DNA of 64,000 nt from Carpediemonas membranifera BICM (taxonomy: Eukaryota > Protista > Fornicata). The position numbers and the translations under genes were made by a program. This document shows, piece by piece, positions 989 to 61,250 of this stretch (positions are counted from its first letter, which is position 1; each line of letters opens with the position of its first letter). Below the pieces are notes generated by a model. The model did not search any database. It had not been told where the DNA came from and was given only the letters and a program-made list of their open reading frames with translations. The stretch lies in NCBI GenBank assembly GCA_019828565.1, contig JAHDYR010000040.1, positions 1-64,000 on the forward strand, read 5' to 3'.

Positions 989-3147
989 TTAGTAATTGGT
1001 GCGGCGGGTGACAGACCTACCACGCGCCACCTGCCGCTCCAACTTGCTCGAGTTCAGTGCCAGTCGGTCACGGTCCTTCTTGATGTCCCCAAACGCCTTC
1101 CTCAGCTCCCGCAGCGCCTCCACAAGCTCATCTCCGCGCCTCTTGAGTCGCACATTGACTGCTTCAATGCTCTCCCCGGGCATGGGCTGGAGTGGGATGA
1201 CGGCCTGGATCTCACGGACCCTCGCCTCCTTGTCTGCCGCAACCATCTCCTTGATCTCCTTTGCTCTCCGCGTGGTTGCTGCAGCAGTGGCCACACTCTG
1301 TTGGAACGCGCCGACCATCGGCCTCAGAGCCTCAGCAAGCTGCCTGTGCTCCATGTTCGCGGCAGCCGTGACAGTAGCCCGAAGGGACGAAATATGTCGC
1401 CGTACGAGCTTGATAGACTCGTCAAGGCCAGCCACCGAGAACTCAAGCGATTCGGGGCCAGTCGAGAGAAGCGGGGTCGCCATCAAACAGCGCGACGCTT
1501 CCTCCAGCGACTGTGTGAGGCTCCGCCGGGCACCGCGCATCCCGTCCAACACACCCTGGATGCCTGCGAGGCTCACGCTGTTCAGCTGGTCTGCGGCCAT
1601 CGGCGGCAGGGCGGGCAGAGCTGCGAGCTCGACAGCCCCAGCCTCGCAGCGGTCGGCCACGAACGAGCCGAGCTTGCGGATGGCTGCGACGCTCTGCTCG
1701 AGTGTATCAGGCAGGACTGTGCTGAAGGTGGTGGTGGCGGCATGAACCTCAGAGAGCGCCTTGACAAGCTCGGGTCTACCGTCAAGCCCGGGCATGCTGG
1801 CAAGTATCTCCATCATGCTGCCAAGGCTATCGACCAGACGCTGGCCATCGCCAAGAGCCTGCAGGTTAAGGCCCTCGACCTCTGGGAGCACATGGTCTTC
1901 GATCTCATCGCCCAGATCCCGCTGCAGCCGGGAAAGCTCAGCCCCAACCTGCACGGCTATCGCGGGCTGACCGTCGCTCTTATACCGGGCTGACCACATC
2001 GCCTTGACACCCTGGTACCAGTCGATCACGCCCTCGATCGCCTCCATCCTCTCCGTGAGCTCTGCAGCCAAGACCTGGGCGTTCGACTCCAGGCTCTCAA
2101 GCTGTGAGGCGGCCTGGGCCTGGTTTGTCTGGAGTTTCCTCATGAGAACCGGCAGCGCTGCCCTGAGCGCGGCAGTGCCGTTAACGGCCTTGTGGAGCGA
2201 CACATCCGCATGCGTCACCTCCTCGCCGAGCTGGGTGATGTCTGCCTCAACCGTCCTCAGCACATCCGTCGCAGCGGTGGGGGGTGCGGCTGCAATTGCC
2301 GAGAGCGCCTTCATCCCGTCCTCAATGATTCGAACTGGGTCTGGCGCGGCGGCGTGGGGCACAGGGAGGTCGGCAGCAGGCCCGCCTAGGGCTGTGAGCG
2401 CCCTGGCGTAAGCATCAGCCCTAAGCTGGATGTCTCTGGCAAACTCCTCCTTGGCCTTCTTCAAACGAAGCTCCATCTTTCGTTGGGCCGCGTCCGAGTC
2501 TGCGAGAGCGGCCTCTAGACTCTTAATGTCCGCCGCAGCCTTCAGCTGGGTACGTTTCATCGCCATAAACTCGTCCGCGGAGCACTGCTCCTTCGGCTTT
2601 GGGATGGGCAGGGTCTGCATGGAAGAGTCGACCATCGCCCGGGGCCGGGGCGGCTTAGGGGTAGGCTGAGGCTGCGTCTGTACACCGGCAGCGAGTAGTT
2701 CAACGAGTTCCTCCTCATCTTCGTCCTCAGGCTCGTCAACCAGTTCTTCCGTCGAATCCTTCTGGAATATGCTTTCATCGAACGCATCGCCGTCCACAGT
2801 CTCAAGCAGATCCGGCTCCTCGACTGGATCGGCCACGAGCTCGGTCTCTGGATCATCTGCCGTCTGCTCGGGCGGCTGCTCACTAGACATGGGCGGCTGG
2901 GGTGCCTTGTGAGACGGTGGAGCGTCTGCTATCTCTATTTCCTCGACATCCACGTTCAATGGAACATCAAAATGTTCGTTTGAGGCTTCAATCGTCGGCT
3001 GGTCCTTGGTTTCGGTATGATCGACATCTATGACACCGCTGGCAGTTGGATCGGACGCATTTTCAGCCAGAAGATCCTTCTTCTTCGAAGATTTCTTCTT
3101 CTTGCCTGTGTAATGTGTTCAAACTCTTTCAAACCAAGTAAGCCCAT
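989..3147 (-). CDS. Long coiled-coil protein with acidic N-terminal region; 29-nt intron 3106-3134; N-terminus MGLLGKKKKSSKKK
   Basis: The 656 aa ORF stays open upstream to 3105. A GT..ACACAG intron with an in-frame TGA joins it to ATG at 3147. Confidence 0.75.
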
Positions 3148-3434
3148 CGTCGTCGTTGTTGGGGTTAGGTGCAGCGAGATAAAAATTTGTGGAGTCAGTC
3201 ACATGGCGCTGATTGGGCTGCCGACTGGGCCGGTGTCGGTGCTAATGAGGGAGGGTTGGCTCAGTATCAAGCTCTTTTCGCACTAATCAGTTGATTGACG
3301 AGGTCAAGAATATGCAGGACGACATCATTTGCCAGACCCACAACGTGTCAAAAAGGCATTACATACAATTGTATCCACCGCATCATAAGCCCCCTGCCTC
3401 ACTTCATCTCCATTAACCATATACTAGGTTACAT

Positions 3435-5607
3435 TTAATCGACCGGGACGGGCTGGGGCTCCGGTACGTCGCTCTCAGTTTCCGCCTCGATGGCCGCAGC
3501 CTCCTGCCGCCCAACCAGGGTCAGCGGGTCCACGAACCGGTCATCGCTCTCAGACATCCAGCCGCCGATGACGGCGACCAGGTCGACCAGGCCGTCCGCA
3601 TCCAGAGACAGCGTGTCGAGGGCAGTGAGGGCAAGCTTCACGCCAGTCGGGGTCTGCGACACAGGGCCGAGTCGGGCGGCCAGGACGGCGCGGACGCCGG
3701 CCTTGGTGTTTGCATGCTCGTCGCCCACAAGCCACGCTACCAGCTGGGAAATCGCACTGGCCTGTGCCTTCAGACGCCGTACAGCGAGGGCGATGAAAGG
3801 TCTGCGCCCCCTTGCCTTGGCATCATTGAGGGGGGCGATCAGGTTCTCCTTCTGGAGGGCAGTCACCTTCCGCTTAATCGTTGTCAGCGAGGCGTCCAGC
3901 CCAGCCACGGAGCCTGGCGTCTCCGCGTGCAGTATATCCCCAATGTTGACACTGACCGGCACGAGGTCCCTGAGCAAGGGTCGAGCTGGGCCCCGGTCTC
4001 GCGCCTCTGCCGGCTGTGGTCGGGCGGGACTGCCCATCCGCCGCATGCAGGTCGGGTCCCGGAGCGGGTAGGGCGACTTCGACTCCTTGGGAGTCAGTCG
4101 GGCTGTGGCTGCCAGGGGGCGGGCCGGCGAGGCAGTGTGGGTGCCAGTGAGCCGGGGCGTTGGCCTGTGCTCGAAGGCGGGCTGCGGGAGTTGGGGCTGT
4201 TCCTGTTCGGTCTCGTCGCCCCGTTGCTCTGGCGAGTCGTGCTCCTCGGCCCGGACCTCAGCCTGCTGCTCCACCACGGGCGGGCGGGTCTTCTTCTTGC
4301 GGGCGTCCCGTGCTGCATGCGCCAGGATTTCGTACGCCAGTGCTGCGGCAATGAGCCTGCCCTCGAGCGGCAGACGGGGCAGCTGCTCGATGTCGAGGTC
4401 CCGTTTTCTGGCGAGCAGGTCGGCAGTGGCCTCGTCCGTCGCCCTCTCTTCTCCGACGCCCTGCAGCACCTCATGGGCCCTCATGCTGATGACGCTGGCC
4501 AGGTAGTGGGCACCACGGACGTCGGGCGAATTCTTGTTCGCGGTGTCGAGCTCGAGCTTCTTCATGAGGAAACCCAGCGTGACTGGGTGTGCCGAGGCCG
4601 GCCTACGCAGGTCCATCTCAACCCTCTCGTCCGGCGTGGCCTCCATGTACGGTGCGAACAGGGCTCTGATGGGGACCGGATCGTTCATCAGGTTGGCCGC
4701 GTCCCTCTCGCTGCCGGGGACGGGGGACGCAGACTGGAGCAGGCCGTCCTCGAGGTGAGCGGGGGAGAGTCTGTCGAGGGTGCCGACAATGATCTTGCGA
4801 ATGTGGCTCGAGAAGGTGGGGTATGCCTTGACGCAGGACCGGTAGTACTTCCGGAACGCCCGGTCGGTTGCTAGGAGCAGCGAGAGAAGAATGGCTACCT
4901 CCACACGGCGTGCGGCGAAGGCCTGGCCGATGTCCGAAGGCTGGTGAGAGTAGTACTCGTGGATGGTCGAGTCGATCGCCTCTAGGTCCGCATCGCGGAG
5001 GGAGCTCGAGTCCATGAAGAGTGAGACGGGCTGTTCGATGATACGAAAGAGGTTGGAGATGAACTTGTTGTCTGCTCCGCGCAGGATTACAGGGATCGAG
5101 GTCTTGGGCGTCTCGGGACGGCCGTACTGAGCCAGGACACGGAGAACCATGACGGAGCGGTAGGAGAGCACCGCATCCATCAGCAACATGCACCGCTGAA
5201 CACCTTTGAGCCCGCCAGACTGGATGAACTTGTCTGATGGAGAGGGGGTGATTGCTGGGGTCGCGTCGAAAGAAAGAAGCACAAGGGATGCGATAAGCTC
5301 CATCATCGCATCTAGTACGGGAGCGGAGGTTTCTATGCAAAGCTGTCGCCCAATAAGGGACGCAATATCATGTTCTATGAAGAGATCTAGCATTTTCCTG
5401 TCGTCTTCCATGTTCTGCTGCGACGAAAGGATGTCTGACAGGTACATCACTGATGCCAAGCGGATAGATGATTCGTAGCTGCTCGACAGTGCGAAAGACA
5501 CCTGCTGGAACTGCAACGGGAGCTCGATCATGATCTGTTGGTGCAGAATAAGACCGATGCGTTGTTACGAAATTCTGACCGGCTCGCAGCAAAGTACCGG
5601 TACGCAT
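3435..5607 (-). CDS. Hypothetical helical/ARM-like protein (~710 aa); probable 34-nt intron 5535-5568
   Basis: 698 aa ORF 3435-5531. Upstream exon MRTGTLLRAGQNF joins in frame through GTAACA..CAACAG. Confidence 0.65.
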
Positions 5608-5831
5608 TAGGCTGTAGCGCTGATTAATCGACGGCTTCGGCTTTCTTTACCTTCCCTGGTAGTCCGACTAAAAGAATCCGCGGTTTGAGGGCTGGGTTTG
5701 CGGAAGTAAACGGGTTTACAAGCAGTTCCACCATATAAAATAGCATAAAATGAGGTCAGAAAGCCTCGGGTGGCTCGGGTACTGAGAGGTCGAGCGTGCG
5801 AGTGTGAGGGCGGCCGGCCGTTCACCCAACT

Positions 5832-6170
5832 TCAACGTCTACCGCGCACCCACAACGCATAAGCCTCTTGCAAACACACCGGCTTGATATCCCCAGCCTC
5901 GGTGGAGCACTCAGACGGCAGTACTGCGCCGATTGACGAGGCGGATGTGAACGGGACGACAACAAGATGGTTAGCACCGCAAAGCATGATGCCTACTGCT
6001 ATCAATCCAGCCCCAAATATGGAAATGATCGATGATAGAAACACTTTGTCCGGAAAAACGACCACAGAACGCATCATGTCGGTGGGCACGACAACGAAGA
6101 CAGCGTATAGCGCAAAAAGCACCCAGACAAACATACCAGCTGCTAAAAAGCGATACTTTGCTGCATTCAT
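5832..6170 (-). CDS. Small two-TM protein, PIG-P-like (GPI-GlcNAc transferase subunit)
   Basis: Two hydrophobic segments with LYAVFVVVP..FPDK..N....PF.S..SI spacing resembling PIG-P. Confidence 0.45.
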   Translation of the reverse strand: MNAAKYRFLAAGMFVWVLFALYAVFVVVPTDMMRSVVVFPDKVFLSSIISIFGAGLIAVGIMLCGANHLVVVPFTSASSIGAVLPSECSTEAGDIKPVCLQEAYALWVRGRR

Positions 6171-6567
6171 CTCTGTAGACGTGCCAATTTCTGTGTTACC
6201 CGTCTGAACGAGGTGCACTTTATGTAGAGTCTAGTGTTGTCGCGTCTGTGCTCGTCTGTTACGCGCTCATCTGTCGTCTATTGCTGGCGTCTGAAGCTCA
6301 TGTCGTCGTCTTCGTCATCTTCGTCTGGCCAAGACAGACCCGGCCAAGCTAACCAACCGTCTCTTAGCTGAGCACATCAAGACAAGCGGGGCCCAGCCCC
6401 TACCCGAGGTGGCGGCCGAAGCAGAGACGGCCCGGGTTCCAAATGCCCGGACTGGCTCGCAATAAACCAAAGCGGAGAGACCCCGTTTACTGTGCCTGTG
6501 TGACTAATTCCCGAGGGAAGCCTGCGAACTCTTCTCGACTTAGACACGAGCATTTACTGCGCATCGT

Positions 6568-7518
6568 TCACCCGAGGGCCTCGAGCTCCGCCTGAGCCTT
6601 CAGCACAGTCGCCTCAGTCACACCGCTGAGCCCGATGACCTTGGTCCTCACCTCAGCCTCCGCACCCTCGCTGACGGCCAGCTCCTTGTCGGTCAGTGCG
6701 ACGATGATGGCCGCCGCAGCCACAGTCTCGGACCGGTACGCCATCCCGCGGCCCTTCTCGGCAACAGAGTTTGCCCGGGTGCGCCAGAGCTTCTGCATGG
6801 GGAACGTCATGCCGTCGACGGCCCCGATCCGATCGAGCATCGAGTTGACGTCGGCATTTGCCACCCTCGTTTTTCCAGGGATGATGGTAACTTCGCTGCT
6901 CACCTCCCGGATGACCTTCTCGATCTTCTTCGGCGTGTACTCTGTGCTGTCCGCGCTCTTGCCGAACTCGGCCTGCAGGGCACGGCTGAGGTCCTTGAGA
7001 GACACAGACCCGCCCCGCTCGTCCAGGGCAAGACGGATGCATGCAGCGGCGAACATCTGGATGCTTCTGCCGCGGCGGGACTTGGCGGACCGTTTGAGGT
7101 AGCTTGTGTAGATGTTGACCGCGCGGGTGCTGATCTCCTTCGCCGGCTGGAAGTTGAAACGACGCATTAGGCGTTCCACTTCGCCCCTGAGCTCCTTGGT
7201 TGACTTCTCGATGCGTGTTTCCGTCGTCCCCGACCCGAAACCGCGGCCCGTGCTCAGGTGGAGGGAGCCGAACTCGTTCTCCTTGCCACCGACGCGAGAA
7301 CGGTCCTGTGACGATGAGTCATCAGCAAATGAGCGCCATTCGCTGGTCTTATCAATGTATTGCCCGACAACAATGCCGCATTCCTTGCATATGATGTCCC
7401 CAGCATGTGGCCGCTCCTCTGTGTTCGTCGAGCCGCATTCAGGGCATTCAACCTGCTTTTCTTGCATAACATTCGTCCGTACCGACACCAAGGGCTTTCC
7501 GGCCCATCCGCTGCTCAT
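6568..7518 (-). CDS. TFIIB: Transcription initiation factor IIB
   Basis: Zn ribbon CPECGS..GDIICKECG, B-finger IDKTSEWRSF, cyclin-fold repeats with AAACI and AAAAI. Confidence 0.92.
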   Translation of the reverse strand: MSSGWAGKPLVSVRTNVMQEKQVECPECGSTNTEERPHAGDIICKECGIVVGQYIDKTSEWRSFADDSSSQDRSRVGGKENEFGSLHLSTGRGFGSGTTETRIEKSTKELRGEVERLMRRFNFQPAKEISTRAVNIYTSYLKRSAKSRRGRSIQMFAAACIRLALDERGGSVSLKDLSRALQAEFGKSADSTEYTPKKIEKVIREVSSEVTIIPGKTRVANADVNSMLDRIGAVDGMTFPMQKLWRTRANSVAEKGRGMAYRSETVAAAAIIVALTDKELAVSEGAEAEVRTKVIGLSGVTEATVLKAQAELEALG

Positions 7519-7620
7519 CGTCGAAAACCAATCGCTCTGACTCCCCGACAGTCGTCTCGCGTCTGACCCCTCTAGCCAGGCAACGATGCCCCACCCACTG
7601 TGTAAATCATGTAAATGGCT

Positions 7621-8169
7621 TTAATCGCTCTCAGCCTCGTTGTCGTCGCCCTTCGCTGAGTCCCCGGCGGCGGCGTTCAACTCCGACGCCTTGGCCTTCC
7701 ACTCGGCCACCCGTTCCTCGGACAGCTCCTTCCACTGGGTTGTCAGCTGGACCGTGTACTTGATGGGGAGCTTCTTCCCTGTGCGGCTCTCGTACTGCTT
7801 GCGGAGGGCGTACTGGAAGAGGGAACAGCCGGTGTAGCCACGAGGGCGCTTCTTGATGGCTCCATTGGCCTCCTTCTTGTCCTTCTTCTTCTCGGCCTTG
7901 ACGGCCTTCTCCTCCTCTCTCCAGGTGGGGTACTTCTTGTCGTAGGCGGCAATCTTCTTGTCATACTCAGCCTTTTCCGCGTTGTACTCATCAACGTATG
8001 GCTTCTTAGCAGCCTCATCTAGCTGAGACCACTCATTGCCCATCGCGCTCATGATCTCCTTGGCCTTGAGCTCGGGCCTCTCCTGCTTGATAGTAGGGCG
8101 CCTAGCAATCGTGAATTTGATGTATGGTTGCATAGGTTTCTTTGGCGGAGCCTCACGTTCTTCACCCAT
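7621..8169 (-). CDS. HMG-box protein (two boxes)
   Basis: PKKPMQPYIKF..RPTIKQERP..MGNEWSQL..KKPY, plus a second degenerate box. Likely start is MGEERE at 8169. Confidence 0.88.
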   Translation of the reverse strand: MGEEREAPPKKPMQPYIKFTIARRPTIKQERPELKAKEIMSAMGNEWSQLDEAAKKPYVDEYNAEKAEYDKKIAAYDKKYPTWREEEKAVKAEKKKDKKEANGAIKKRPRGYTGCSLFQYALRKQYESRTGKKLPIKYTVQLTTQWKELSEERVAEWKAKASELNAAAGDSAKGDDNEAESD

Positions 8170-8354
8170 TGTGTGCGACTGTGTAGCACGCCATAAACTG
8201 CCCCGAACATTCTGTCTTCGTTTAGTGTCACAGAAGCTTTTACAGCGATAGTAAGTGATGACAGATACCATTAAGCCCCCAGACACTGCAGATATAGCCG
8301 AATGGGCTTTATGGGGTGATGTCTGACGTGTCAGCGGGATCGCGCCACTCTGAA

Positions 8355-8970
8355 CGTGGCATACAACTCGGCCAACCTGCCAGCCCGGCCCCTGGCCACA
8401 CTTTACGTCGATACCGTAGGTCCGATCGATCGATCCGATCACGGTGTACCAGCAGAGGTACCTATAAGTGCAGCTTATGTAAACACATCCATTCTCTTCA
8501 CGCTTAGGGCTCCCACAGTTATAACTGCCAGACAACCCGATCACCGACGCGGCCGCCTACGTCCAAGCCCTGGACGAACACCTACAGTCAGTCGCCGAGC
8601 GAGCCGCTGACTCACAGGCGGACCATCTGCGCCGCCGCAAGATCACTCCAGACGACCCAGTCGCACCTGGCGATATCGTCCTGGCCCTGAACCCACGGCC
8701 GTCCAAGCTGCACGGCCACCTTGGCCCGTTCAAGGTCCTCGCAGTGCGCGACCACCACGCCATCAGCATCTCGCTACTGCTTGGCGGCGAGGAGAAGGTC
8801 ATCCACGCCGATCAGGCAATCCGAGTCGAGGCCACCGAGCCCAACGGCCAACTGGCCGCTCTCCAGGCCGGTGACGCCGAGGAGTACTACGTCGAAGCCA
8901 TCCTGGGCGTCGATGAAGCCGATCCCAGCCACCTTATCGTCAAGTGGCTCGGCTACGACGAGACTTCTCA
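8355..8970 (+). mobile_element. Deleted Ty3/gypsy integrase and chromodomain remnant
   Basis: TLYVDTVGP; GDIVLALNPRPSKLHGHLGPFKV (GPY/F region); EEYYVEAILG..LIVKWLGYDE (chromodomain). Confidence 0.8.
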
Positions 8971-9109: not shown

Positions 9110-11990
9110 ATGCTCCGCCACATAGAGGTCCAGGTCTCGACGAGAAGGGCAAAGCTTAGACCTATGACGATCGAGGTCGAAGGAGAAGAGCCAGTACTAT
9201 CGTATCCTTACAGGAAGAGCAAGCCCCAAGAAGAGGAGATTGAACGCCAGGTCGCAGAGCTAGCGAGGATGGGTATAATAGAGAAGTCACGTAGCAAGCA
9301 CAACAGTCCACTGGTGCTGGCGAGCAAGAGAGGTGGAACCTGGAGGATGTGCGTAGATTTTCGGAAAGTGAACCTCCGTACGGCGCTCCAAAATGTCCGT
9401 TGCCGAAGATCGACTCACTGATAGAGTATGTTGAAGGTTGCAAACACTTCGCGTCTCTTGATATGAAGCATGCCTTCCACCAAGTACCACTAGCGAACCA
9501 ACAGACCAAGGAGCTGACTGCCTTTACGACCGCTTCCGGCAAGTACCACTACAATTTCATGCCGTTCGGCCTGAAGAACGCGGCTAGCCACATGCAGAGC
9601 GCGTTAGAGGAGGTTTTAGCCGGACTAGTCTACGTTTCGTGCCTAGTGTATCTCGACGACATTCTTGTCTTTGGCAAAACCGAGGCAGAGTACCGCGAGA
9701 ATCTCTTGAAGGTCCTAGCGCGTCTAGATGAGGCGGGAATAGTTCTCAATCCAGCAAAGTGCAAGTTCGACCTCACACAAGTGAGGTACCTGGGCTGGTT
9801 GGTGGATGGAGAGGGACGCAGGATAGATCCAGACCGCCTTGAACCAATCAGAGCCATTCAGACGCCCCATAACCTGAAATCCGTCCGGTCACTACTAGGG
9901 ATCCTCAATTGGTTCCGATCATTTGTTCCACAGTACGCTGACGAGACAGATCCGATTCTGAGTGTCATACGGTCGAAGACATTCTTCTGGAACGATGAGC
10001 AACAGGCAAGTCTCGAGCGAGTTAAGGACATTCTCCTCAAGAACGAAAACCAGTATCACTTCAGCTATGATCTGGAGACTGAACTCTTTACAGACGCCAG
10101 TGACCTCGGTGCTGGGGGAGTGCTCTACCAAAACCACGAGGGTCGACTGTGTCCAGTGGCCTATTTCGCTCACACATTTACCGCCGCAGAGAGAAGATGG
10201 TCAACCTACGAGAAAGAGGCGTTCGGCATCCTCTTTTGCGTGAGAAAGATGCAACGCTGTTTAATGAGTGTTCGCTTTACGATCCATACCGATCATCGAA
10301 ACCTAGTATTTCTCTGGAGCTCAAGCAATGATAAGGTTGCCAGGTGGAGGCTCGAGCTCGGACAGTTCGACTTCGACATCGTCCACGTTGCGGGCGAACA
10401 AAACGGTGTAGCCGACGCGATGTCACGCAATACCGTCCGCCTGGATCACTTAGAAGCGGACGAACGCCGTCAAATGATTGCGGAGGTGCACGGGGGAGCC
10501 CAAGGACACCTAAGGGCGCGAGAGGTTGTTAGGAGGCTTCGACTGGCGGACAAGTCTTGGAAAATCATGTGGAGCGACGTGAGAGCATTCATCAAGCAGT
10601 GCCCCATATGCCAACGCCTAGTCCCGCCCGCTACAAGAGCCACGTCGATGCTGAAAACGCTGAAGTTGACCCCGTTCGAGTGTGTTCAAATGGACACCAT
10701 AGGTCCTCTCACTGAATCTGGCGGTTGTAAGTACATAGTGGCTTGGATTGACGTCCTGAGCCGATTCACGAAGCTCTACGCGGTCGAGTCTACTGCGGCA
10801 ACAACAGCGGCGACGACGATAATTGACCTGGCCTCCAACTTCGGTCTACCCAGAATCCTGCAGACTGATAATGGTTCGCAGTTTAGAAATAATCTGGTGG
10901 CCGACCTGACTAGCAAACTCACTCTCAACCATCGATTCAGCACGCCGTATCACCCACAGTCCAACGGGGTAATCGAACGGAGAAACACTGAAATCATGAA
11001 GCATCTTCGAGCAGTTTTACTGGAGACGAGCTGTGAATGGCACGAAGCGTTACCGATTGTTCAGAACATTATCAATGGAGTCCCGAACGAAGACCTACAG
11101 ATGACACCGTTTGAGATCTTGTTTGGACACACAGACAGCAGGAGACCATCAGACGAGCAGTTAGAAGAAGCACTACAGCTCAGCAAGGAGACGAGGAACT
11201 TAGTAGCAGAGTTCAAGAAGGTGGTGACATTCTGCCAGGAGCGGGCTCGGCAGATCACCCAGCAAGTCATCAACGAGTCGCACGGAGAGGAGGAGAGCGA
11301 GTATCAGTACCCTATACAGTCTTGGGTTCTCGTACGATACGCTGGGAAGCCCCCGAAGCTCGGTCCTCAGATGCGTGGGCCGATGAAGCTGCTCGACCTG
11401 GCCGAGAAACGGGCGAGACTGGAAGACGTCGTCACAGGAAGCATCGTGACGGTACACATCGATAGACTGGCCCCCTTCCACACAACGCTGAGCAACCAGG
11501 AGGTCATCAACATGCTCGCTAGGGAGGTAGAACCCTACCACCAAGGTCATCATCGTCAGACACGCCAACCGCCTCACCAAGCTGTAACACCCCCCAGGCT
11601 CCATTGATGAGGCTCGTAAGATGTTCGAGTCCGATAACACCTGGAAGACAGTCGACCATGTGGTTGACTGGCGCTCAGACCCTGCGACCCACGAGCCCAT
11701 CTGCATGCTTCGCTGGCTCGGGTTTGAGCAGGACGAAGACTCCGAATTGCCCCTGAGCAAGGTCCGCACTCTCGATGCTCTCCTCAAGTATCGCGACCTC
11801 CACCCGCAGTTTGACAAGGCCTGCAAGCGCTACGAGAACGCTCATCCGGCCATGGACTCACGTCCGCGCACTCGCACTCCTCGTCGTTAACGCCGGTTCG
11901 GCCTCTGGAGGGGAATGTAGAGATCATTAAAGTGCACCCCGATCATTCGGTAGTTGTTTAAGACCACAGAATGAAATACCTTAAACTGCA
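9110..11990 (+). mobile_element. 5'-truncated, frameshifted Ty3/gypsy pol (RT-RNase H-integrase-chromodomain) with PPT and start of 3' LTR
   Basis: WRMCVDFRKVN, YLDD, TDASD, HTDHRNL, CPIC, QMDTIGP, QTDNG, IERRN, LRWLGF. Frameshifts near 9390 and 11535. GGAGGGGAA is followed by TG at 11916. Confidence 0.93.
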
Positions 11991-42115: not shown

Positions 42116-42157
42116 TTCACACATTTATCACACTGCAACCCATGGCGCTTCTAGCGC

Positions 42158-43803: not shown

Positions 43804-43936
43804 GAGTCTTTACGTGTCTACATAAAGATATGCTGCAGTAGTTTGACTGTTCCCGACTAAAGGGTGGAGACAGGGCAAATCACTTCACTGACCCGGCCGA
43901 ATCAGCACTCAACCCACACCAAAAGATGGACGAGAT

Positions 43937-51777: not shown

Positions 51778-52114
51778 TAGATCGAGTCATTAAAGCAGAG
51801 GCCGTACATGTTCATCTTGCGAGTGGCAAGAGTGCTGAACTAAGTGTTTTTGGCGAACAATCAGTCTCTACAAGAGTTTTTCCTCGATCTCATTGGTCAA
51901 AAAAGAGTCGCGATTCTGTCCATATCGCATGACGTTGTCACCCTTGCCGGCGTGACTGATCGTCGTCAAATTCAGTCTGGGCGTGGGACGAAAGGGCGGA
52001 CGGGCTCTCGCCGATGTGGCGCAGCTCAACCAGGCGGTATGCCCTCAGAGCGGGCTGTCGGGGCGATGTACATTGACGTCTGTCTGGTTGACCTTTATGT
52101 TGAATAATATGGTG

Positions 52115-53563
52115 TCACAAATGCTTGGCCACTGCCGCCGCCCGCTCCCTCTCCTGCAGCTCTACCCGTTCCCTCAGCCTCTCCACGCTGTTGGCCGGCC
52201 TCTGCCCGGGTAGTGTCGCGGTCAGCCCGGCCCACAACCCCGCCGCCACCCCAACCACCAGGGCAATGGGGCTGAAGGTGATGACCACGGAGTAGGGCAC
52301 GGTATGCCGGCAGAAGTAGGACAGCGAGAGCCCCGCCGTGTCCCGAGTGACAGGCCCGAAGGTAAGGAACAGCAGATGGATGAGGCCGAAGTCGGCCACA
52401 AGCAGCAACGTTGCCAGGCCTATGATATACGTCGCCGGGGTCGACCTGCTTCCGACTCCGAGGTAGCCAAGGACGCGCAGGCCCGGGATGACGTAACTCA
52501 ACACCAGAACGATGAAGGCCAGCGCCACGCACTCTCTGACTGGTGTGATCATAGCCCGGTACACCAGCAGGTGCTGCATGGACACGTCGGTCAGAACGAG
52601 GGTTAGGAAGAGAGGGATGGTCGCAACCAGGACGAGACGGGTCGAGGCGACGAGCACCTGGAAGTACGCCCCAAGTACGTTATACAGCTTGTGCCGGGAC
52701 GCTATGACATGGAAGATGTCGGCCTCGATGTCGTTGACTGCTTGGTCGAACCGCTGCCGGGTCCTGTTATGCCTCACCCGGCCCCGTACAGTCAAGCCCT
52801 CCTCACGCTCAACGACGAGCTGCTGATAAACCTTGGTCAGATGCTCCCCGCGCTCCTTGATGGACTTCATAGAGAGACGGAACACAGCCTCTGAGATTGC
52901 CTTGGGTCGACTCCGCCACAGTCGCCACGAGACGGCAGGGCCCCTGCCCAGACCGTATCCAGCCAGGAGGTAGAGCACAATAACGCCTATCGTGGTGAGC
53001 AGCACAAAGGCGCCAGTGGGAATCGACGGGGGAATGGCCATTACGGCATCGTCGAAGGTCAACTCAACAATGGTTGTGATGGGGTTGGCATTGTCATCAA
53101 CGTAGCCCGATGTCTGTACTGGCACTGGCACGATTGCATACGACAGGAACATCGTGAGCGCCACGATCCCGGCGACGACAACGCCTGCCAGCGTCAGCAC
53201 GGCGAGTACTAGGAGCAGCTTGGTCCGAACCCTCCGCTTAATCCCGTACGAGTCATACGAGATCAGACTCAGGGGAAGCACAAGCAGGGCTGACACGCCC
53301 GTGGCGAGCGTGACGGAGTAGTACAGGACCGAGCCGATAGTGATGGAGAGTGGGAGGAATTCGGCAACGAGGAAGTCGATGATGACCAGAAATGGGGTGA
53401 ATATAGCTAGTGCGAGTACCGTTGCTGCGCCTAGTATGTGGAGCGGCGCGGCGTCGTGTGTTTTCAGCCGCTTAATGATAAGTATGCTGAGAAAGAAGGA
53501 GAACGTAGCCCAACAAAGGCTGATTATGGATATAGCAACACCAGCGACGGCCTGTTGCCACAT
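52115..53563 (-). CDS. LMBR1-like multi-pass membrane protein
   Basis: Five TM segments, LLAGYGLGRGP, long cytosolic helical loop, then further TMs. Confidence 0.65.
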   Translation of the reverse strand: MWQQAVAGVAISIISLCWATFSFFLSILIIKRLKTHDAAPLHILGAATVLALAIFTPFLVIIDFLVAEFLPLSITIGSVLYYSVTLATGVSALLVLPLSLISYDSYGIKRRVRTKLLLVLAVLTLAGVVVAGIVALTMFLSYAIVPVPVQTSGYVDDNANPITTIVELTFDDAVMAIPPSIPTGAFVLLTTIGVIVLYLLAGYGLGRGPAVSWRLWRSRPKAISEAVFRLSMKSIKERGEHLTKVYQQLVVEREEGLTVRGRVRHNRTRQRFDQAVNDIEADIFHVIASRHKLYNVLGAYFQVLVASTRLVLVATIPLFLTLVLTDVSMQHLLVYRAMITPVRECVALAFIVLVLSYVIPGLRVLGYLGVGSRSTPATYIIGLATLLLVADFGLIHLLFLTFGPVTRDTAGLSLSYFCRHTVPYSVVITFSPIALVVGVAAGLWAGLTATLPGQRPANSVERLRERVELQERERAAAVAKHL

Positions 53564-53641
53564 TTCCAGCTAAATGGTCCAACAAGTCTTGTTATCCAAG
53601 CCACATGTCACGTCCTAAGCCTGCCAGTTTAAAAATCTAAC

Positions 53642-54424
53642 CTAGTTGCCTAGCCGCCCCTTCACCGTGTCACTAACCACCCGCTGGATCCCGCCCGCCC
53701 GCCCTGGCCGGGTGAGCGTGTTTTGATTGACGAGCCCGAGGCCCTCCGCGCCCTTGGCTGCACGTAGCAAGCAATTCAGCACCTGGGCAATCTCTTCGGC
53801 CATACTGTGCCCGTCCTCAACCTCTGTAGGCACCAGGTAGAGCTTGGCGCGGTCTCCATGGGGCTTGTCCTCGGCCATGACGACCTTGACGCCGTAGTGG
53901 TCCCTCTCGCGGTGGAAGCTGCCGTAGTGGACATACGCAACGTCCTCGAATGGGAAGCGCTTGCTACGCTTCACAGCTCCTCCTGCAGTCTTAATATGAT
54001 ACAGGGCGGCGTCTGTGAAGATGGCGACACGGTCGGACACCTTATTGTACTGGTTGATGCACTGCAGCACGTATCCCTTAATATACAGCTCATTATCCTC
54101 CTGTTGTGTCGCTATTTCTTCCTTGCACTTCTCAATAACCTCAATATCCTCGGCAGATGGCGTGCATCCTGCGGTGGCAGAACCAAGCATATCAGCGAGC
54201 TTAACAACGTCACCAGCAAGTACGCATTCATTAAATTCCCTCTTTGTCGTTGAATAACGTACGCTGTGCATCGATTGAGAAGAGCAAGCGCCTGTTTTGT
54301 TTTTGATGCCATAAACTGCGTTTGATCCAATCAAACCACTCTGGACCATCATCCCCGGTGACAGTAACAGGGCCGAGGAAGCTGATTCGTTCGCCGTGGA
54401 GTAGAAACATGAGGCATCATTCAT
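53642..54424 (-). CDS. Hypothetical protein with C-terminal PH-like (hSac2-like) domain
   Basis: CINQYNKVSDRVAIFTDAALYHIK...KRFPFEDV..V.YG. Confidence 0.55.
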   Translation of the reverse strand: MNDASCFYSTANESASSALLLSPGMMVQSGLIGSNAVYGIKNKTGACSSQSMHSVRYSTTKREFNECVLAGDVVKLADMLGSATAGCTPSAEDIEVIEKCKEEIATQQEDNELYIKGYVLQCINQYNKVSDRVAIFTDAALYHIKTAGGAVKRSKRFPFEDVAYVHYGSFHRERDHYGVKVVMAEDKPHGDRAKLYLVPTEVEDGHSMAEEIAQVLNCLLRAAKGAEGLGLVNQNTLTRPGRAGGIQRVVSDTVKGRLGN

Positions 54425-54793
54425 TCGCTTGGCCTCGTAGTTTTTTTCGCGAGGCGGGCGTCGGGCGGCACCGCTTTACGAGCGGCCCATAAACCGACTT
54501 AGCAGCGACGATCCCGTGACAAACCTACTAGATGAAGCTCGTGAAAGAACGGTGCAGTTCTAGGTCGACCTGACTCGTCTGGAGCCCTCTGCGACCCCGG
54601 AACACCTGCCTCCATCCCGTCGGCCTCGACTGGTCTGGACGAGCTACAGGCTCTGCTTGAGACACCAGCGTCACCCTCCACAGCCACTGCTGACCCACGT
54701 CCAAGTGTGAAGGAGAGTCGAGGACCCGCCCCCGGTGCATCTGCTGGCGATCAAATTTAATGGGAAAATCATGCTGCATCCCTTGCTATCATA

Positions 54794-55521
54794 CTATTTC
54801 ACCACCGGCATCTCGAGCACTAGCCGACCGCCCCTGTAGTCAGCGCTAACGGCCTCCGCGTCCACCGGGAACGCGAGGGGCAGCTCTAGTTGGTACTGCC
54901 CGGGGACTACGAGCTCCACCCACTGCGGCTCGACGTCCAGGTCGATGTCCTCGATGCGGGGCTGGGCCGGGAGGGCCACGGTCAGCCTGATGGCGTCCGG
55001 TGTCCCCGACTTAACCTTAAACTGAACACTAAAATGGTCAGACCAGTTGAGGGCCTCCTTGTATGCCACGGAGTACTCGGGGGTCTCCGGCTCCGTCTTG
55101 GAGGCCGGCCTGGACGCGGTCACCTGAATCATGGGCTTGCCCAGGGATGGGGCCTGCACAGGCTTGGTAGGCTGCGGCTGAGCTACCTTCTTCGGCTGCT
55201 GCTTAGGCTGCGCGGGCTTGCGCTGGACGGGCCTAGCGGCGGCCTTTGAGGGCTTCTGCTGTGTTGCAGACTGTGTGAACTCGGCGACCTCCTGCTGCCA
55301 GATCTTGGGGTCGTTCCTGTTCTGCTCTTCGAGCTTCCTGATCTCCTCGCTATACTTCTGTGTGAAAGGGGGCTGAGAAAACGGACCAAGAAGTTTTCCG
55401 GGTCACTGATCTGCTTGGCGTAGTCGGCAAAAAGCTCAACGAACTTCGGGTCCTTGAAGCACTCCTTTATCCTATTCGCTTCCTTCTGACTGATCTTGAA
55501 GTCTTCCTTTTCGCCGCTCAT
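54794..55521 (-). CDS. DNAAF2: Kintoun/DNAAF2-like dynein assembly factor, short form (232 aa); 29-nt intron 55358-55386
   Basis: RIKECFKDPKFVELFADYAKQISDPENFL|KYSEEIRKLE; C-terminal CS domain YQLELPLAFPVD..LVLEMPVV. Confidence 0.75.
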
Positions 55522-55753
55522 TGCTTAAGTGCAGCTTATGCTAATCGACCGGGCTTAATGTGTCTGGACGTGTGTCTTTTGGTCTTCCTCGGTCCTCGTG
55601 GGTATGTCTGCTCACTTTGTTCCCCCCTGATTGCTGGGGGAAAGAGGGAAGTCCAGATGTTGGCTGAACAGGGTGACGTTCCGTTTATAAAGACACAGCC
55701 AAAGACTTGTCTGTGTTAATGCATCGTAAGATGGCTAATAAGACTCTTGGCCC

Positions 55754-56045
55754 TCACTTCTGCTGAGATATGAGGAGGACGTTCTCACCCTTGAGCAAGA
55801 TGGTACCGATGGGACGCTGGGTATCCTTCTTGCGGTTAACTTCTATAGCATCAGCAAGCGTGAGGTTCATGAACTCGTCGAAGCCGACAATGCGTCCCTT
55901 GATGAAGAAATCACGCATGTCTCTCAGCCAGACAGTAACGGTCTCTTTGTCCTTCAAATAGGAGTACACCTGGTTCTATGGAAGAATTTGGGATGAGTAA
56001 ACATACTATAGGTTCCAGGACGCCCTTTGCGCTTTTCCTGTTCAT
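55754..56045 (-). CDS. SNRPE: Small nuclear ribonucleoprotein SmE; 31-nt intron 55976-56006
   Basis: VLEPI|NQVYSYL..VTVWL..GRIVGFDEFMNLTLADA..ILLKGENV. Confidence 0.95.
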
Positions 56046-56206
56046 CGCTGCTGCCTCTGACCCGAGCTTCGAGTCGAAACAGAAGGAGGCCCAGAAGTTG
56101 ATGGAGGAGCACCCCCGCAGCCTTCGTCTGTAGCTCGGTGATCGTGGACGTCATACATCTGGCTATACCGGCTTCGTCCTGGATTCCCGCATTTTAAACT
56201 ATCAAC

Positions 56207-57541
56207 TCAATCGACTCTGCCTCGCTTGCCCTCGTGCGTCGGCTCAACTGGGATGTGCCGCACGACCTTCCCGAAGTTGTCATAGCTCTTTCCCGCCATG
56301 ACAGCGGCCTCGTCGCCCTCAGCGGCCTCCCTCACCTTCTCCATGGTGATCAGCCGCCGGCCATAGACCTCAGTGAGCTCCTGGAAGCAGTTGGACACAA
56401 GTCTGAGGGCAGGGTGGGTGGGCAAGTCGGCCTCGGTGTAGAACTCGACAATCACCGGCAGCCAGAAGACGATGCGGCCGCCCACGGTGAGGTGGGAGGC
56501 GGCGAACGCTAGGAGGGAGACCATCTGGTTGGCGATCGAAGTGCTCTTGTTTCGCGGCATGGAAGGCGTCTCGCCCTTCGGTTTCGCCGCTCCCGAGTCT
56601 ACTGTCTTCACAAAAGCACGCAGGCCATATGGTGGATCGCAAATGATTGAGTCAAATTTCCCGGACCAGATGTTGACCTTCATGTCGGCCCAGCCGATGG
56701 AGGGCCGGGGCAGGTGATAAAAGTCGAAGTTTGTGAGGATGTTCTTCTCTCTACGAACCCCGTGTCGCGTGTAAGCCCCGATTATCTTGATGTCGAGGTC
56801 AGTCCCCACACAAGTGCTGCCCCAGTGTGTCGCTGCGACGAGGATTGAGCCTGTGCCGACGAACGGGTCGAGGGTGAACGACCCCGGTCTCGCCCGGCCC
56901 ATGTTGCCCATGATCAGGGCGAGCTCGGCGTCCATGGAGGTCGGCCCGAGGAAGGGGCGCTTCTTGAGCGTGTATTTGTACGGCAGCTGGCGCTGGGCGG
57001 TGTGGAGGAGCATCCCCAGGAAGACGCGGGCGGGGGCTGTCAGCTTGGAGTTCTCGCCGTAGTGGTACATCGTCATGAACATCTTCTCGCCGTGCTTGAG
57101 GTCCACGGTGCCGAACTTGGGGGCGAGGAACGACAGCTTCTCGAAAGAGTCTCGCTTGTCAAAGAGAGACATCTTGCGGCCGAAAGTGAGGAGGTCGAAG
57201 GCCCATGTAGAGGTCTCTGGGAGGAACATCCGCGTGATCTCCTCGGCGCGTGGCCGGCACTGATCGGCAACGTCCTGGATGGAGTCGCCCACGGCCACGA
57301 ACTCATAGACCTCGTAGATGAGGACACAACGGCTACACACACGAGCAACATCGTCCCTAGGGTTCTCGCCTGTGAAGCGAAGAATGGCAAACGGCCGTTC
57401 AGGCGTGAGAGGTTCGTCAATCTCGTATTTCACGCCGTACATGGAAGTAACCGCTTCAAACTCGGGCATACGAAAGTCCAAGTGGAATTGGGCGAAGTGA
57501 ATGATGCACTTAAGCCCTGATTCGGCCGTAGGACTTGACAT
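56207..57541 (-). CDS. TRM11: tRNA m2G10 methyltransferase Trm11
   Basis: HLDFRMPEF, LKKRPFLGPTSMDAEL, DPFVGTGS, DPPYG. Confidence 0.93.
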   Translation of the reverse strand: MSSPTAESGLKCIIHFAQFHLDFRMPEFEAVTSMYGVKYEIDEPLTPERPFAILRFTGENPRDDVARVCSRCVLIYEVYEFVAVGDSIQDVADQCRPRAEEITRMFLPETSTWAFDLLTFGRKMSLFDKRDSFEKLSFLAPKFGTVDLKHGEKMFMTMYHYGENSKLTAPARVFLGMLLHTAQRQLPYKYTLKKRPFLGPTSMDAELALIMGNMGRARPGSFTLDPFVGTGSILVAATHWGSTCVGTDLDIKIIGAYTRHGVRREKNILTNFDFYHLPRPSIGWADMKVNIWSGKFDSIICDPPYGLRAFVKTVDSGAAKPKGETPSMPRNKSTSIANQMVSLLAFAASHLTVGGRIVFWLPVIVEFYTEADLPTHPALRLVSNCFQELTEVYGRRLITMEKVREAAEGDEAAVMAGKSYDNFGKVVRHIPVEPTHEGKRGRVD

Positions 57542-57777
57542 GGGCGGTGATCGTCGTATAGTCGTTCGAGTCGAATGAAATGGTAGCACAACCCCCGAAA
57601 TGCCCTCGAACAGTCGCGCCCAGCTGCAACCTCCACCATTGCGTTCTCAACTTTTGTGGCAACATCGCCATTATCGGCTGACTTCGGTATGTTTGGAGAG
57701 CAACAGGTGCTTGAGGACCCGGTTTGTCCTTTATAATGTATGATAGTAGTACGCTCTTGCATGTCCTGCCTCGCCAC

Positions 57778-58194
57778 TCAGTCGAGCGCGTCGAGCTTGG
57801 CCACCTGCTCGCCAAGCACAGCTGGTCCGTTGACTCGGCCAAACTTGCGGATAACTATCCCCTTGTGGTGCTCGATGGCTTTCTTGCGGCAGGACCTGAT
57901 GGTGCCGCCCTTATGGATCACGGTACAGGCGGGGAAGCGGTAGCGTAGGGAATCCTCCATCTCACTGACGGAAGCATGCGCTATGCGAAGAATAAACACC
58001 TGAAGCGCTGGATAATGGTATACTAGTTTCGTAAACCTGGATGTAAGCCCTTTAGCACGAGCCCCATGCCTTTGCAGCACCACATCATGCAGTTTCGCCA
58101 CAAGACGGGTATCTACCTCGTCTTTGGACATTGTTTCGGTATTCTTCTTGGGTGAATAGTCAATATAGAGGTATCTATACTTGTGCCGCACCAT
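57778..58194 (-). CDS. POP5: RNase P/MRP subunit Pop5
   Basis: MVRHKYRYLY; FILRIAH; HKGGTIRSC. Confidence 0.85.
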   Translation of the reverse strand: MVRHKYRYLYIDYSPKKNTETMSKDEVDTRLVAKLHDVVLQRHGARAKGLTSRFTKLVYHYPALQVFILRIAHASVSEMEDSLRYRFPACTVIHKGGTIRSCRKKAIEHHKGIVIRKFGRVNGPAVLGEQVAKLDALD

Positions 58195-58526
58195 ATGAAG
58201 GAAGGAGTGTTGCGAGCATTAAACTGCATTGGTGTCTAAGCAGACAACAGAAGCTTCTCCAGATATTAGAATGATGACATCCGACTTGCACTGTCCATGT
58301 AAACGATTACTCGTTCAATGGGCGCGTTTTATTAACGCTGTAGCAAATCTGACAATTCGGACAGTTCGGACGAAAATGACCCCCCCCCAAGGGTATGACT
58401 CCAGTGGGGGCTCCACGTCGCGGGCTGCCCTCCCGCATACACTCGCCAGTCCCAGCAGCTGCGGGGTTGTCCAAGTGTATCATCTAGGCTCAATGTCCCA
58501 GGTCCATCTGATGTCGCGCGGTAGTC

Positions 58527-58861
58527 TCATACTATCCACACGTTCCTAGCACTAACTCGGGTTCCACGCCGTACAAAGTGGCGCGGCTGTCCCGGTGTGC
58601 AGCAAGGGCCAGAGGCCAATGCAATCCCACGGGTCCGAAGACGTCGTGGCGCACAGCTAGGATTCTGACATCATATGATGATGCGGCGGACTTACCTTGT
58701 TGCCGCTCCAGGGTCCCGTCGGCGCACCTGATTGATGTTGTTTAGTTCGGCACCGTGGAGAGACCGAAACGAAGATAGCGAGAATAAATGCGATCTAGAC
58801 GTGTAGACGAAAGGGAGAACACGAAACAGCACCATAACAGCACCATAAGTGTGATGGACAT
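58527..58861 (-). CDS. Possible 91-aa protein with N-terminal hydrophobic segment; introns 58795-58822 (28 nt) and 58665-58695 (31 nt)
   Basis: Two GT-AG introns of the size typical for this window give one open frame, MSITLMVLLWCCF|IAFILAIFVSVS..NK|NPS..; no recognised homology. Confidence 0.35.
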
Positions 58862-58972
58862 GGATATCGGGAGGAACTTTTGTGCAAGACGAATTTGGCG
58901 AATATGTGCGAAAAAGATGACGAGTTCAACCGCTCGACGCTTTTAGTGATACAGGGCACGCCTCCACTTCTC

Positions 58973-59599
58973 CTACGCATCCACCTCTGGTCCGGGAGGC
59001 GGCAGTTTCATTGCAGGCATGGCTGAGGCGGTAAGATAGGCGGGCGTGGTGAACGGCGCCGTCTGGTTGAGCCGAGCCCTTGGCGTCGCCACATCGCTCG
59101 CAGCACTCCACATAGGGCTGGTCATGTATGGGGAGCCCTGCGGATGGAGGCGGGGCGACGGGGCGGTCTCCAGCTCTTCCCGTTTGTCAATGGGAAGGAA
59201 GTCGGGCTTGAAGTCGTAGTAGATGACCCCCTCTCGCAAATCACCGCCTGTGTTGGATCCCGCATAGCCGTGGTCCCTGAGCGTGCTGTTGTCGTCCGGG
59301 TATATGATGTTCTCTGGGTGAACCTGCTTCTTGTAGAGAACGACGCCGTTAATGGACCCACCGTGGCGGTCTTGGATCATTCGCCTGATCAGGAAGAGGG
59401 ATGTGTCTACGGGAACCCGGATAGTGAAGTCTAAATAGCTCCAGGAGACGAGGCGGATGTGTAGGAGGACAATTTCTGAGGACGGCACGTTAACAGGCTC
59501 GTAGCTGAAAGGTGGGCGCGCAGGGCCTGATTCCTTCTTGCTCTTCTTCCCTTTCTTGCCCTTCTTCTTTCCTTTCTTCTTGCCGCCCTTCTTCGGCAT
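58973..59599 (-). CDS. Hypothetical protein with lysine-rich N-terminus and ubiquitin-like core
   Basis: MPKKGGKKKGKKK; IRLVSWSYLDF..TSLFLIRRMIQDRHGG..STLRDHG. Confidence 0.7.
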   Translation of the reverse strand: MPKKGGKKKGKKKGKKGKKSKKESGPARPPFSYEPVNVPSSEIVLLHIRLVSWSYLDFTIRVPVDTSLFLIRRMIQDRHGGSINGVVLYKKQVHPENIIYPDDNSTLRDHGYAGSNTGGDLREGVIYYDFKPDFLPIDKREELETAPSPRLHPQGSPYMTSPMWSAASDVATPRARLNQTAPFTTPAYLTASAMPAMKLPPPGPEVDA

Positions 59600-59858
59600 C
59601 ACACGGTCGATGATTTGGCGAAAAACGTATCGTCACTGCGGGACAAGCATAGACATGCCACTCTGGATGTGTTGGCCAGGCGCGGTGTTGCAGCGGCGCA
59701 TGGGTCGATCATGTCTGTGCACGAGCCGCGGTTGATGACAATTCTTGAGGTCGACGGCACGGGCTATCGGCTCTATACAACTGAGAAGGCTTCTTGAAGA
59801 CTAGATAGCGACTACACACAACGAAGATATGACTACAAATCAAATCCTTTATGTCCAA

Positions 59859-61250
59859 TTATGAGTGTTCACTATTTTCCAGCGTTTGGGCGATCTGCTC
59901 GACCCGGGTGGCAATGTGTCTGCCGTATACGAAGTCCCGCATGGCCGGGAGCCGGGCCATCACGTAGTCGACCATGAAGCGGAGATCACGGGTCTCGGCC
60001 ACGTCGAGCATCTTCTGCACCACGTAGTTGCCGTACTTGTCCTTAACCAGTGCTCCAAGGACCTCGCCCTGGGGCGTTAGCAGCTCTGTGATGAGGGCCT
60101 GGCGGTGGGCGGGGGAGAACTCCAGACAGCACTCGATGACGTTCGAGGCGAACTTGTGCATCGAGAGCCGACCGACTTCGCCGTGAAGTGCTGCGACGAC
60201 GGCGGCTATATCCTCAGGCTGGCCCTTCTTGATCACATGGCTGACCACGTAGTTGCCAAACCGGTTCTCGGCCAGGGATATGGCGTTTTTGACGATCTCT
60301 GCAACGAGCGGGGCTGTCTGCTCTGTCGTGCCATACTCGAGAAGCCGCTGCAGCACGCGGCATGCGAATGAGTGGGTGGAAAGGGCGTTCACCTGGCCAG
60401 GCGAGGCCGCCGCGTCTGCGATGAACTGGAAGTCGGCCGGAGTTGCGTGGGTCAGGATGTTCTGGGCGACATGGTTGCCGTGCTGGTCCTTCATCACTGT
60501 GAGAATGTCTCCCCGGAGCTGCTGGAGGAAGGGGGCGTGGGATGCGGGGCAGAGCTCAATGATGCGCTGGACAACCCTGCAGCCATACATGTGGGTCGAA
60601 AGCTGGTACACGGTTGGGGTCAGCGTCGCGACAACGTCTCTCTGCTGGGCCGGTGTGGCTCTCTCGATGAACTTCTGCACGACGTAGTTACCGAAGGGGT
60701 CAGTCGAGAGGTCCGTGGCGTGCTCCTTCACCATGGGCAGCGCCAGGGCGAGCTCCGTCTCAGAGCACTCGTCAAAGCGCTGCTGCACGTATCTAGACCC
60801 GTTCTGGTCGGCTGACAGGGAGTGCAGCGTCTCGACCATCTCAGCAAACGGCATCGAGAGCGCCTTGTGCCCTGGCCCGTGTCTGTGGTCCCGGCCGCGG
60901 TGCTCCATGCGGACAGCGGCCTCGTGGGACTGTATGGCGTACATCATGGGCGGGTTGTGGTACATGTGGCCCATGGCGTACTGGAGCGGCGGGGAGCCGA
61001 TGCCGTTGAGACCAGGGGGGACAATCTCGCCGTACTGCACGGGTTCGGGGGACCAGACGTCGCGGGTACCTGGTGGTGATCCGACTACCTCCATGCCATC
61101 AAAAGCGGCAGGAACAGGAGGTGAACGGGCCTGATCAATGGGCATGCCCTGATCCATCATCATGGAAGGCATCATGATCGAGAAAGGACGCCAGTTTCCA
61201 ACGTTGTAGTAGTTAGTGTAGTAGTTAGGAACATTATTGTCCTGATCCAT
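59859..61250 (-). CDS. Pumilio/PUF RNA-binding protein
   Basis: Eight PUF repeats: SRYVQQ, NYVVQK, CRVVQR, NHVAQN, CRVLQR, NYVVSH, SNVIEC, NYVVQK. Confidence 0.96.
   Translation of the reverse strand: MDQDNNVPNYYTNYYNVGNWRPFSIMMPSMMMDQGMPIDQARSPPVPAAFDGMEVVGSPPGTRDVWSPEPVQYGEIVPPGLNGIGSPPLQYAMGHMYHNPPMMYAIQSHEAAVRMEHRGRDHRHGPGHKALSMPFAEMVETLHSLSADQNGSRYVQQRFDECSETELALALPMVKEHATDLSTDPFGNYVVQKFIERATPAQQRDVVATLTPTVYQLSTHMYGCRVVQRIIELCPASHAPFLQQLRGDILTVMKDQHGNHVAQNILTHATPADFQFIADAAASPGQVNALSTHSFACRVLQRLLEYGTTEQTAPLVAEIVKNAISLAENRFGNYVVSHVIKKGQPEDIAAVVAALHGEVGRLSMHKFASNVIECCLEFSPAHRQALITELLTPQGEVLGALVKDKYGNYVVQKMLDVAETRDLRFMVDYVMARLPAMRDFVYGRHIATRVEQIAQTLENSEHS

Follow-up and report, generated by a model that had tools for sequence, protein, structure and literature searches.

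Textbooks describe long directional arrays, in which tens of unrelated genes follow one another on one strand, from kinetoplastids and dinoflagellates, and in both groups such arrays go together with spliced-leader trans-splicing; dinoflagellate mRNAs, for instance, carry a 22-nt spliced leader. Giardia and the other diplomonads, the nearest well-studied relatives of the flagellate considered here, express their compact genes one by one. Here we describe a long one-strand gene run in Carpediemonas membranifera, a free-living metamonad flagellate. Within the stretch of DNA analysed (positions 1–64000 of the 185,969-b contig 40; hereafter the window), ∼35 host genes between 989 and 61250 all lie on the minus strand. 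Our preferred reading, to which we assign a probability of roughly two-thirds (0.68), is that these compact genes stand head to tail and are expressed independently of one another, and that the array represents the far extreme of a genome-wide bias towards local co-orientation.

The layout resembles the directional clusters of Leishmania and Trypanosoma in its tens of unrelated one-strand genes with short spacers, and also in that two clusters diverge from a strand-switch region, the two arms here filling the 186-kb contig. Unlike in kinetoplastids, the C. membranifera mRNAs carry no spliced leader and have their own 5′ ends at initiator-like sites; moreover, the switch measures only 138 bp, and strand correlation ends at ∼20 kb instead of extending over whole chromosomes. 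As in the unidirectional gene blocks of dinoflagellates (e.g. Symbiodinium), long same-strand runs are found here in a free-living protist outside Euglenozoa, but no leader was seen, the genome is compact (24 Mb) and the bias is local. C. membranifera shares with Giardia and the diplomonads short untranslated regions (UTRs; 7–41 nt at the 5′ side and 10–47 nt at the 3′ side), few introns, a TAAA/AGTAAA-like poly(A) signal near the stop codon, and promoters within spacers of ∼100 nt. A literature search directed at Giardia returned no report of long one-strand gene runs, this comparison being made by literature alone. Gene-strand bias of the bacterial type also comes to mind, as the genes on both arms of contig 40 point away from a single switch; in contrast to that type of bias, no replication-linked skew could be separated from the coding strand, and over most of the genome the pattern does not extend to whole chromosomes.

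The extent of the run was determined from three concordant sources: the list of open reading frames (ORFs), an ORF caller that scores codon usage by log-likelihood (its training set being 17 Pfam-confirmed genes) and treats both strands alike, and a Pfam scan of 30 window ORFs plus 50 further ORFs on the rest of contig 40. An earlier note on this DNA had reported ∼35 unrelated host genes on the minus strand from 989 to 61250, and both the count and the coordinates were right. The families recognized on this strand comprise TFIIB, HMG-box, Det1, apyrase, BBS5, inositol polyphosphate kinase (IPK), RapGAP and SF3A2, as well as PAP2, DCN1-like (cullin-binding), UDPGP, NUFIP1, RPN7/PCI, methyltransferase and PUF. 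Well-scoring plus-strand ORFs of the window were retrotransposon genes only. Likewise, a search of the gaps between 989 and 61250 for open frames of ≥ 35 codons revealed no supported host gene on the plus strand, the best candidates (36575–37150 and 48640–49077) having weak codon scores and no Pfam match. Such a run had been called vanishingly unlikely at random orientation, which agrees with our estimate that a 35-gene run would be expected 2 × 10⁻⁷ times in 8300 genes.

Spacers of 78–300 bp are frequent between the genes of the run, in line with the gaps of 130–300 bp noted previously. The overlap described for the pair at 41341/41374 is real at the level of ORFs; the upstream ORF (41341–41895) has no cover by complementary DNA (cDNA), and the mRNA 5′ end of the downstream gene (41415) falls within it. 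The GC content of the window is 0.54–0.60, and a tRNA scan and an Rfam scan of the window, spliced-leader RNA families included, gave no match. We also considered an assembly artefact and rejected it: the contig is continuous, the cDNA contigs are colinear with it and the gene frames are intact.

Beyond 61250 the run is broken by transposon debris (61580–63853), but it picks up again outside the window. By codon scores and Pfam, it starts at the contig end, reaches 74078 and comprises ∼39 genes in total. A divergent switch follows, a 138-bp spacer at 74079–74216, and from 74217 to 185.8 kb all Pfam-supported host genes are on the plus strand. The families of this second arm include AATF, kinesin, DEAD helicase, proteasome subunit, PQ-loop, topoisomerase I and beclin/APG6, and further Arf, Nop53, phospholipase B, Mnd1, kinase, RimK-like and RsmB-like. 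Minus-strand ORFs beyond 74 kb with a Pfam match are nearly all gypsy or reverse-transcriptase genes; the single other one has two weak matches under the curated cut-offs. Low-scoring minus-strand ORFs without a family lie in the plus arm at 76332–77955, 101532–104151, 108929–109306, 111745–113541 and 128933–133343. Contig 40 is made up of two arms, of 74 and 112 kb, that diverge from one 138-bp spacer. No telomere repeats were found at either end of the contig; the ends resemble coding or transposon sequence.

mRNA ends within the run

Each gene tested has its own monocistronic, polyadenylated mRNA without a spliced leader. The cDNA data consisted of assembled contigs from four small runs (X1–X4) of one sample in one study, and were placed on positions 39400–45399 (6 kb). 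Five separate mRNA 5′ ends were mapped on this segment, at 39465, 40722, 41415, 42358 and 44739. All five lie at an A preceded by C or T, and we infer that they are transcription starts. No cDNA contig of the four runs bridged two genes. Several spacers had no cover in any of the four runs, although a gap in cover by itself proves nothing.

Behind all five 5′ ends, the loose ends of the cDNA contigs corresponded, in reverse complement, to a single sequence that includes GACCTTGGCTGTCACTCA. This shared 5′ sequence was considered as a spliced leader and rejected: the 18-mer is the adapter trimmed from Roche 454 differential RNA sequencing (dRNA-Seq) libraries prepared by Vertis Biotechnologie (PMC4176332), it matches nowhere in the whole genome with ≤ 2 mismatches, and it is found for unrelated organisms, in papers on plants, human cells, Epstein–Barr virus (EBV), Helicobacter and Neisseria. 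At five of five 5′ ends the adapter was joined directly, after one or two A residues, to genome-colinear sequence, with no leader in between. As this is a commercial adapter without a match in the genome, these mRNAs have no leader of their own. This fits the remark in the earlier note that no obvious trans-splice acceptors precede the start codons. Polycistronic transcription, one of the two readings that it offered, found no support in the mature mRNAs of the tested 6 kb, which are monocistronic, lack a leader, have their own poly(A) and are never bridged.

The individual transcripts, all from the minus strand, follow each other closely. A spliced gene occupies 37800–39465; its 5′ end is set by an adapter junction at 39465, its first exon runs to 39435, and one cDNA contig jumps from 39435 to 39306 across a 128-nt GT..AG intron (39307–39434). 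Next is the mRNA of a PAP2-family gene (39521–40722; Pfam PAP2), represented by cDNA contigs 39521–40702 and 40218–40722, the latter with adapter. Its 5′ end (40722) is 7 nt before the ATG at 40715. In this near-leaderless arrangement (40715–40722), the mRNA starts exactly at an out-of-frame ATG that opens a frame of 6 codons. The mRNA of a 173-aa gene (40812–41415) has the adapter at 41415 in contigs of three runs and UTRs of 41 nt on both sides; the T-run before 40812 represents its poly(A) tail, as does that before 42114 for a small mRNA of 245 nt (42114–42358). For the latter, runs X2 and X3 showed loose ends with adapter and with poly(A), and it contains an open frame of 49 codons with a high codon score (42161–42307; score 22.5). 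Finally, the cullin-binding, DCN1-like gene (43927–44739; Pfam Cullin_binding) was covered in X2, X3 and X4 by contigs in which the adapter adjoins 44739, and an 11-nt 5′ UTR leads from there to the true ATG at 44728; at the other end, contigs of three runs stop at 43927, which leaves a 3′ UTR of 10 nt.

Thus, 5′ UTRs measure 7, 11 and 41 nt and 3′ UTRs 10, 41 and ∼47 nt. A TAAA is located ∼7–16 nt upstream of all three mapped 3′ ends, and among 60 host genes of contig 40, 34 have the same motif ≤ 50 nt past the stop codon, compared with ∼10 expected by our own estimate from base composition. On the 5′ side, ATTTT and TTTTG are enriched ≤ 60 nt upstream of the start codons of contig 40, and no motif at a fixed upstream position was found there. 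A further ORF of the segment lies at 42388–43275. Contigs of run X1, with a depth of up to ∼10,000, match only a 230-base part of it (42432–42665) and then continue off contig 40, and a 1915-nt contig matches 42665–43275 at ∼97.5%. This gene therefore has at least one close paralogue at another place that is highly expressed.

Gene orientation across the genome

The share of neighbouring genes on the same strand is near 0.5 in most eukaryotes. To place contig 40 in its genomic context, we used the coordinates and strands of Pfam matches across the whole assembly (24,237,836 b in 69 contigs). The markers were protein kinase, Helicase_C, Ras, AAA, RRM, WD40, kinesin, DnaJ and RabGAP-TBC; for WD40 only matches outside contig 5 were used, one expanded family on that contig having swamped the results. 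This gave 362 gene markers on ∼50 contigs, 182 of them on the plus strand. The published description of the genome lists 24.2 Mb, 69 contigs, a GC content of 57.1% and 8300 proteins (PMC8516963, Table 1).

Marker pairs were on the same strand in 40 of 54 cases at distances < 5 kb (0.74), in 28 of 44 at 5–10 kb (0.64) and in 63 of 97 at 10–20 kb (0.65). The fraction was 0.48 at 20–35 kb (57/119), 0.50 at 35–50 kb (57/113) and ∼0.5 at > 50 kb. Taken together, 131 of 195 pairs within 20 kb were co-oriented, a value reached in none of 2000 strand shuffles, as against 114 of 232 pairs (0.49) at 20–50 kb. The same pattern, with fewer pairs, was obtained with pairs of different families and with sets from which kinases or WD40 genes had been left out. 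Local co-orientation of neighbouring genes is real and genome-wide. Long directional clusters are not the norm: no strand correlation is left beyond ∼20 kb, and so the genome as a whole is not built from them. For the genome-wide check proposed in the earlier note, these 362 Pfam markers gave a divided outcome: co-orientation exceeds random up to 20 kb, but the genome overall is not organized in long clusters.

A two-state fit gave a mean same-strand run of ∼7–14 kb. At a same-strand neighbour probability of 0.75–0.8, runs of ≥ 35 genes would be expected 0.1–0.8 times in 8300 genes. Contig 40 is an extreme case of the genome-wide local orientation bias, and its two long runs back to back suggest a heavy tail, with some regions far more directional than the average. 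A separate two-arm pattern was observed on contig 5, where WD40-repeat genes of one very large family fill positions 6600–325300, many of them with a kinase domain as well. These genes are all on the minus strand at 7–52 kb and almost all on the plus strand at 65–277 kb, which tandem duplication of paralogues could explain.

Gene content, transposons and duplications

At the left end of the window, four host genes (989–8544, minus strand; codon scores 81–160) comprise two without a Pfam family, followed by a TFIIB-like gene (Zn_Ribbon_TF/TFIIB) and an HMG_box gene. Antisense to the host run are two pol ORFs of Ty3/gypsy-type retrotransposons on the plus strand (9349–11607 and 12292–16290), with the Pfam domains RVT_1, RT_RNaseH, rve and Integrase_H2C2. 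Some 13 minus-strand host genes, identified by Pfam and codon scores, then extend from 17747 to 37748 and include Det1, apyrase, BBS5, inositol polyphosphate kinase, RapGAP and SF3A2. On the far side of the segment with cDNA, ∼12 more occupy 45356–61250 on the same strand and by the same evidence, among them UDPGP, NUFIP1, RPN7/PCI, hSac2-like, methyltransferase and PUF. The debris that breaks the run consists, according to Pfam, of a gypsy RNase H fragment on the minus strand (61580–62266) and an endonuclease ORF resembling that of long interspersed nuclear elements (LINE-like) on the plus strand (62573–63853).

Transposons are also abundant in the plus arm of contig 40, where at least 10 gypsy-type or other reverse-transcriptase ORFs lie on both strands between 92 and 171 kb, and host orientation is kept across the insertions. 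Relative to the host genes of the contig, nine transposons are antisense and five sense, which is not significant. Two related elements bearing a chromodomain (95567–101604 and 160412–171327) are 86–91% identical. In addition, an inverted duplicate of 1.1 kb is present at 132961–134079 and 184600–185720, 50 kb apart and with 99.6% identity; one copy is located at the contig end and carries an unassigned ORF of 147–163 aa.

Duplication also links the window to another contig. The segment 29095–31647, containing the 5′ part of the gene at 28866–30764 and BBS5, has a 92–96% identical copy at contig 1:1339860–1343604, in which the following gene is seemingly missing. Many Pfam matches elsewhere are paired at identical scores on different contigs, which suggests frequent recent segmental duplication. 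More than 15 kinesin genes show a break in the Pfam motor-domain match at model position ∼85–87, the two pieces being only 10–35 bases apart (e.g. C54:1323943–1324936, C22:113246–114239, C16:85750–86743 and C17:191018–191996). Judged from the genomic sequence, this split is consistent with a tiny intron conserved at a single ancient position. The single intron of the window seen in cDNA measures 128 nt.

Possible causes and meaning of the one-strand layout

In the reading that we favour, each gene would be expressed from its own compact unit, the spacers unmatched by cDNA being ∼90 nt or less. Spacers this short would leave little room for transcription to stop. Between tandem genes, read-through would be harmless; convergent or divergent neighbours may experience antisense collisions or promoter sharing. 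Inversions would be selected against because opposite-strand neighbours would interfere, and none would have become fixed on contig 40 on either side of the 138-bp bidirectional switch. Avoidance of transcriptional interference is thus the probable selective cause of the one-strand layout, and where spacers are only ∼100 nt the bias is most simply explained in this way. Several points speak against this account. The interference argument alone does not account for the lengths of the two runs on this contig, 74 and 112 kb against a genome average of ∼7–14 kb, and the marker set behind that average is enriched in expanded families (kinases). As for the transcripts, the adapter-tagged 5′ ends of a library of unrecorded protocol could in principle be processed 5′-phosphate ends rather than capped ones; assembled cDNA contigs from one sample of one study are compatible with rare multi-gene precursors, and their placement covers only 6 kb of the run.

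That adapter ligation could also tag processed 5′-phosphate ends would equally suit a kinetoplastid-like scheme, in which the run is a single transcription unit read from the switch at 74.1 kb and its precursor is cut into single mRNAs. Such a scheme would yield what is seen, namely 39 unrelated genes that share a strand, spacers of 78–300 bp between them and one divergent switch. We nevertheless regard it as highly improbable. To our knowledge, the spliced leader is the one known mechanism for capping the downstream cistrons of a eukaryotic polycistron; a leader is absent from five of five mapped 5′ ends, the only common 5′ sequence being a commercial adapter that the genome does not contain, and therefore this known route is missing. 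Moreover, the 5′ ends lie at pyrimidine–A, initiator-like sites, cDNA contigs never bridge two genes and leave several spacers uncovered in four runs, the window holds no Rfam family of spliced-leader RNAs or of any other kind, and the genome overall lacks a long-cluster organization. That the run has no function at all, simply because no inversion happened to fix, with the neighbour bias stemming from the way in which rearrangements arise, is unlikely but deserves some weight: the window was chosen for its extreme look, and if neighbours share a strand with a probability of 0.8, a set of 8300 genes should contain about 0.8 runs of ≥ 35 genes. Such a history would have to accommodate two long runs back to back on one 186-kb contig and transposon insertions on both strands that left host orientation unbroken, and the neighbour bias of 0.75 itself requires a cause.

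Replication, the other reading offered in the earlier note, would be a different source of selection. C. membranifera has been reported to lack the origin recognition complex (ORC), Cdc6 and Ndc80, and initiation at highly transcribed loci via RNA–DNA hybrids has been proposed for this organism without ORC and Cdc6 (PMC8516963). Replication forks might start at few places, on this contig within or close to the divergent switch at 74.1 kb, and travel far, with genes selected to point away from them while transcription still proceeds gene by gene. In keeping with this idea, the whole 186-kb contig divides at one 138-bp switch into two arms, and all host genes of each are directed away from it. 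The idea is attractive for an organism without origin-licensing proteins, yet we judge it to be distinctly unlikely for the following reasons. Intergenic skews are small in either arm (GC ≤ 0.016, AT 0.036) and go with the sense strand. At third codon positions, the GC and AT skews switch from one arm to the other exactly as the coding strand does, so that nothing visible can be told apart from transcription or codon usage. The disappearance of strand correlation beyond ∼20 kb fits poorly with long forks shaping the whole genome, and close opposite-strand pairs do not clearly favour divergent over convergent arrangements (23 versus 16). A more specific version, and quite an improbable one, is that a restricted number of divergent promoters at strand switches, such as that at 74.1 kb, serve as starting points from which replication runs outward for 70–110 kb along with transcription. 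If this were so, long one-strand arrays would be the footprints of an origin-less, transcription-coupled replication, and the switch points its initiation sites.

The arrangement appears to be undescribed within the literature searched. The main text of the genome paper (PMC8516963) makes no mention of polycistrons, gene orientation, directional genes, co-orientation, skew, gene order or synteny, and among the top-ranked papers from a search for Carpediemonas with polycistronic or same-strand organization, none mentioned Carpediemonas. The earlier statement that such a layout had not been described for a flagellate of this kind therefore stands as far as this literature goes.

If the bias only reflects the avoidance of interference in a compact genome, the array would be a useful but modest addition to the knowledge of genome architecture. 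Compared with the textbook cases, the arrays of this metamonad are just as long (39 genes, then an opposite arm of 112 kb), yet their mRNAs are ordinary gene-by-gene products; co-orientation and polycistronic expression can therefore be uncoupled. And because C. membranifera is the only eukaryote reported without ORC and Cdc6, its strand-switch points are concrete candidates for sites at which replication may start.

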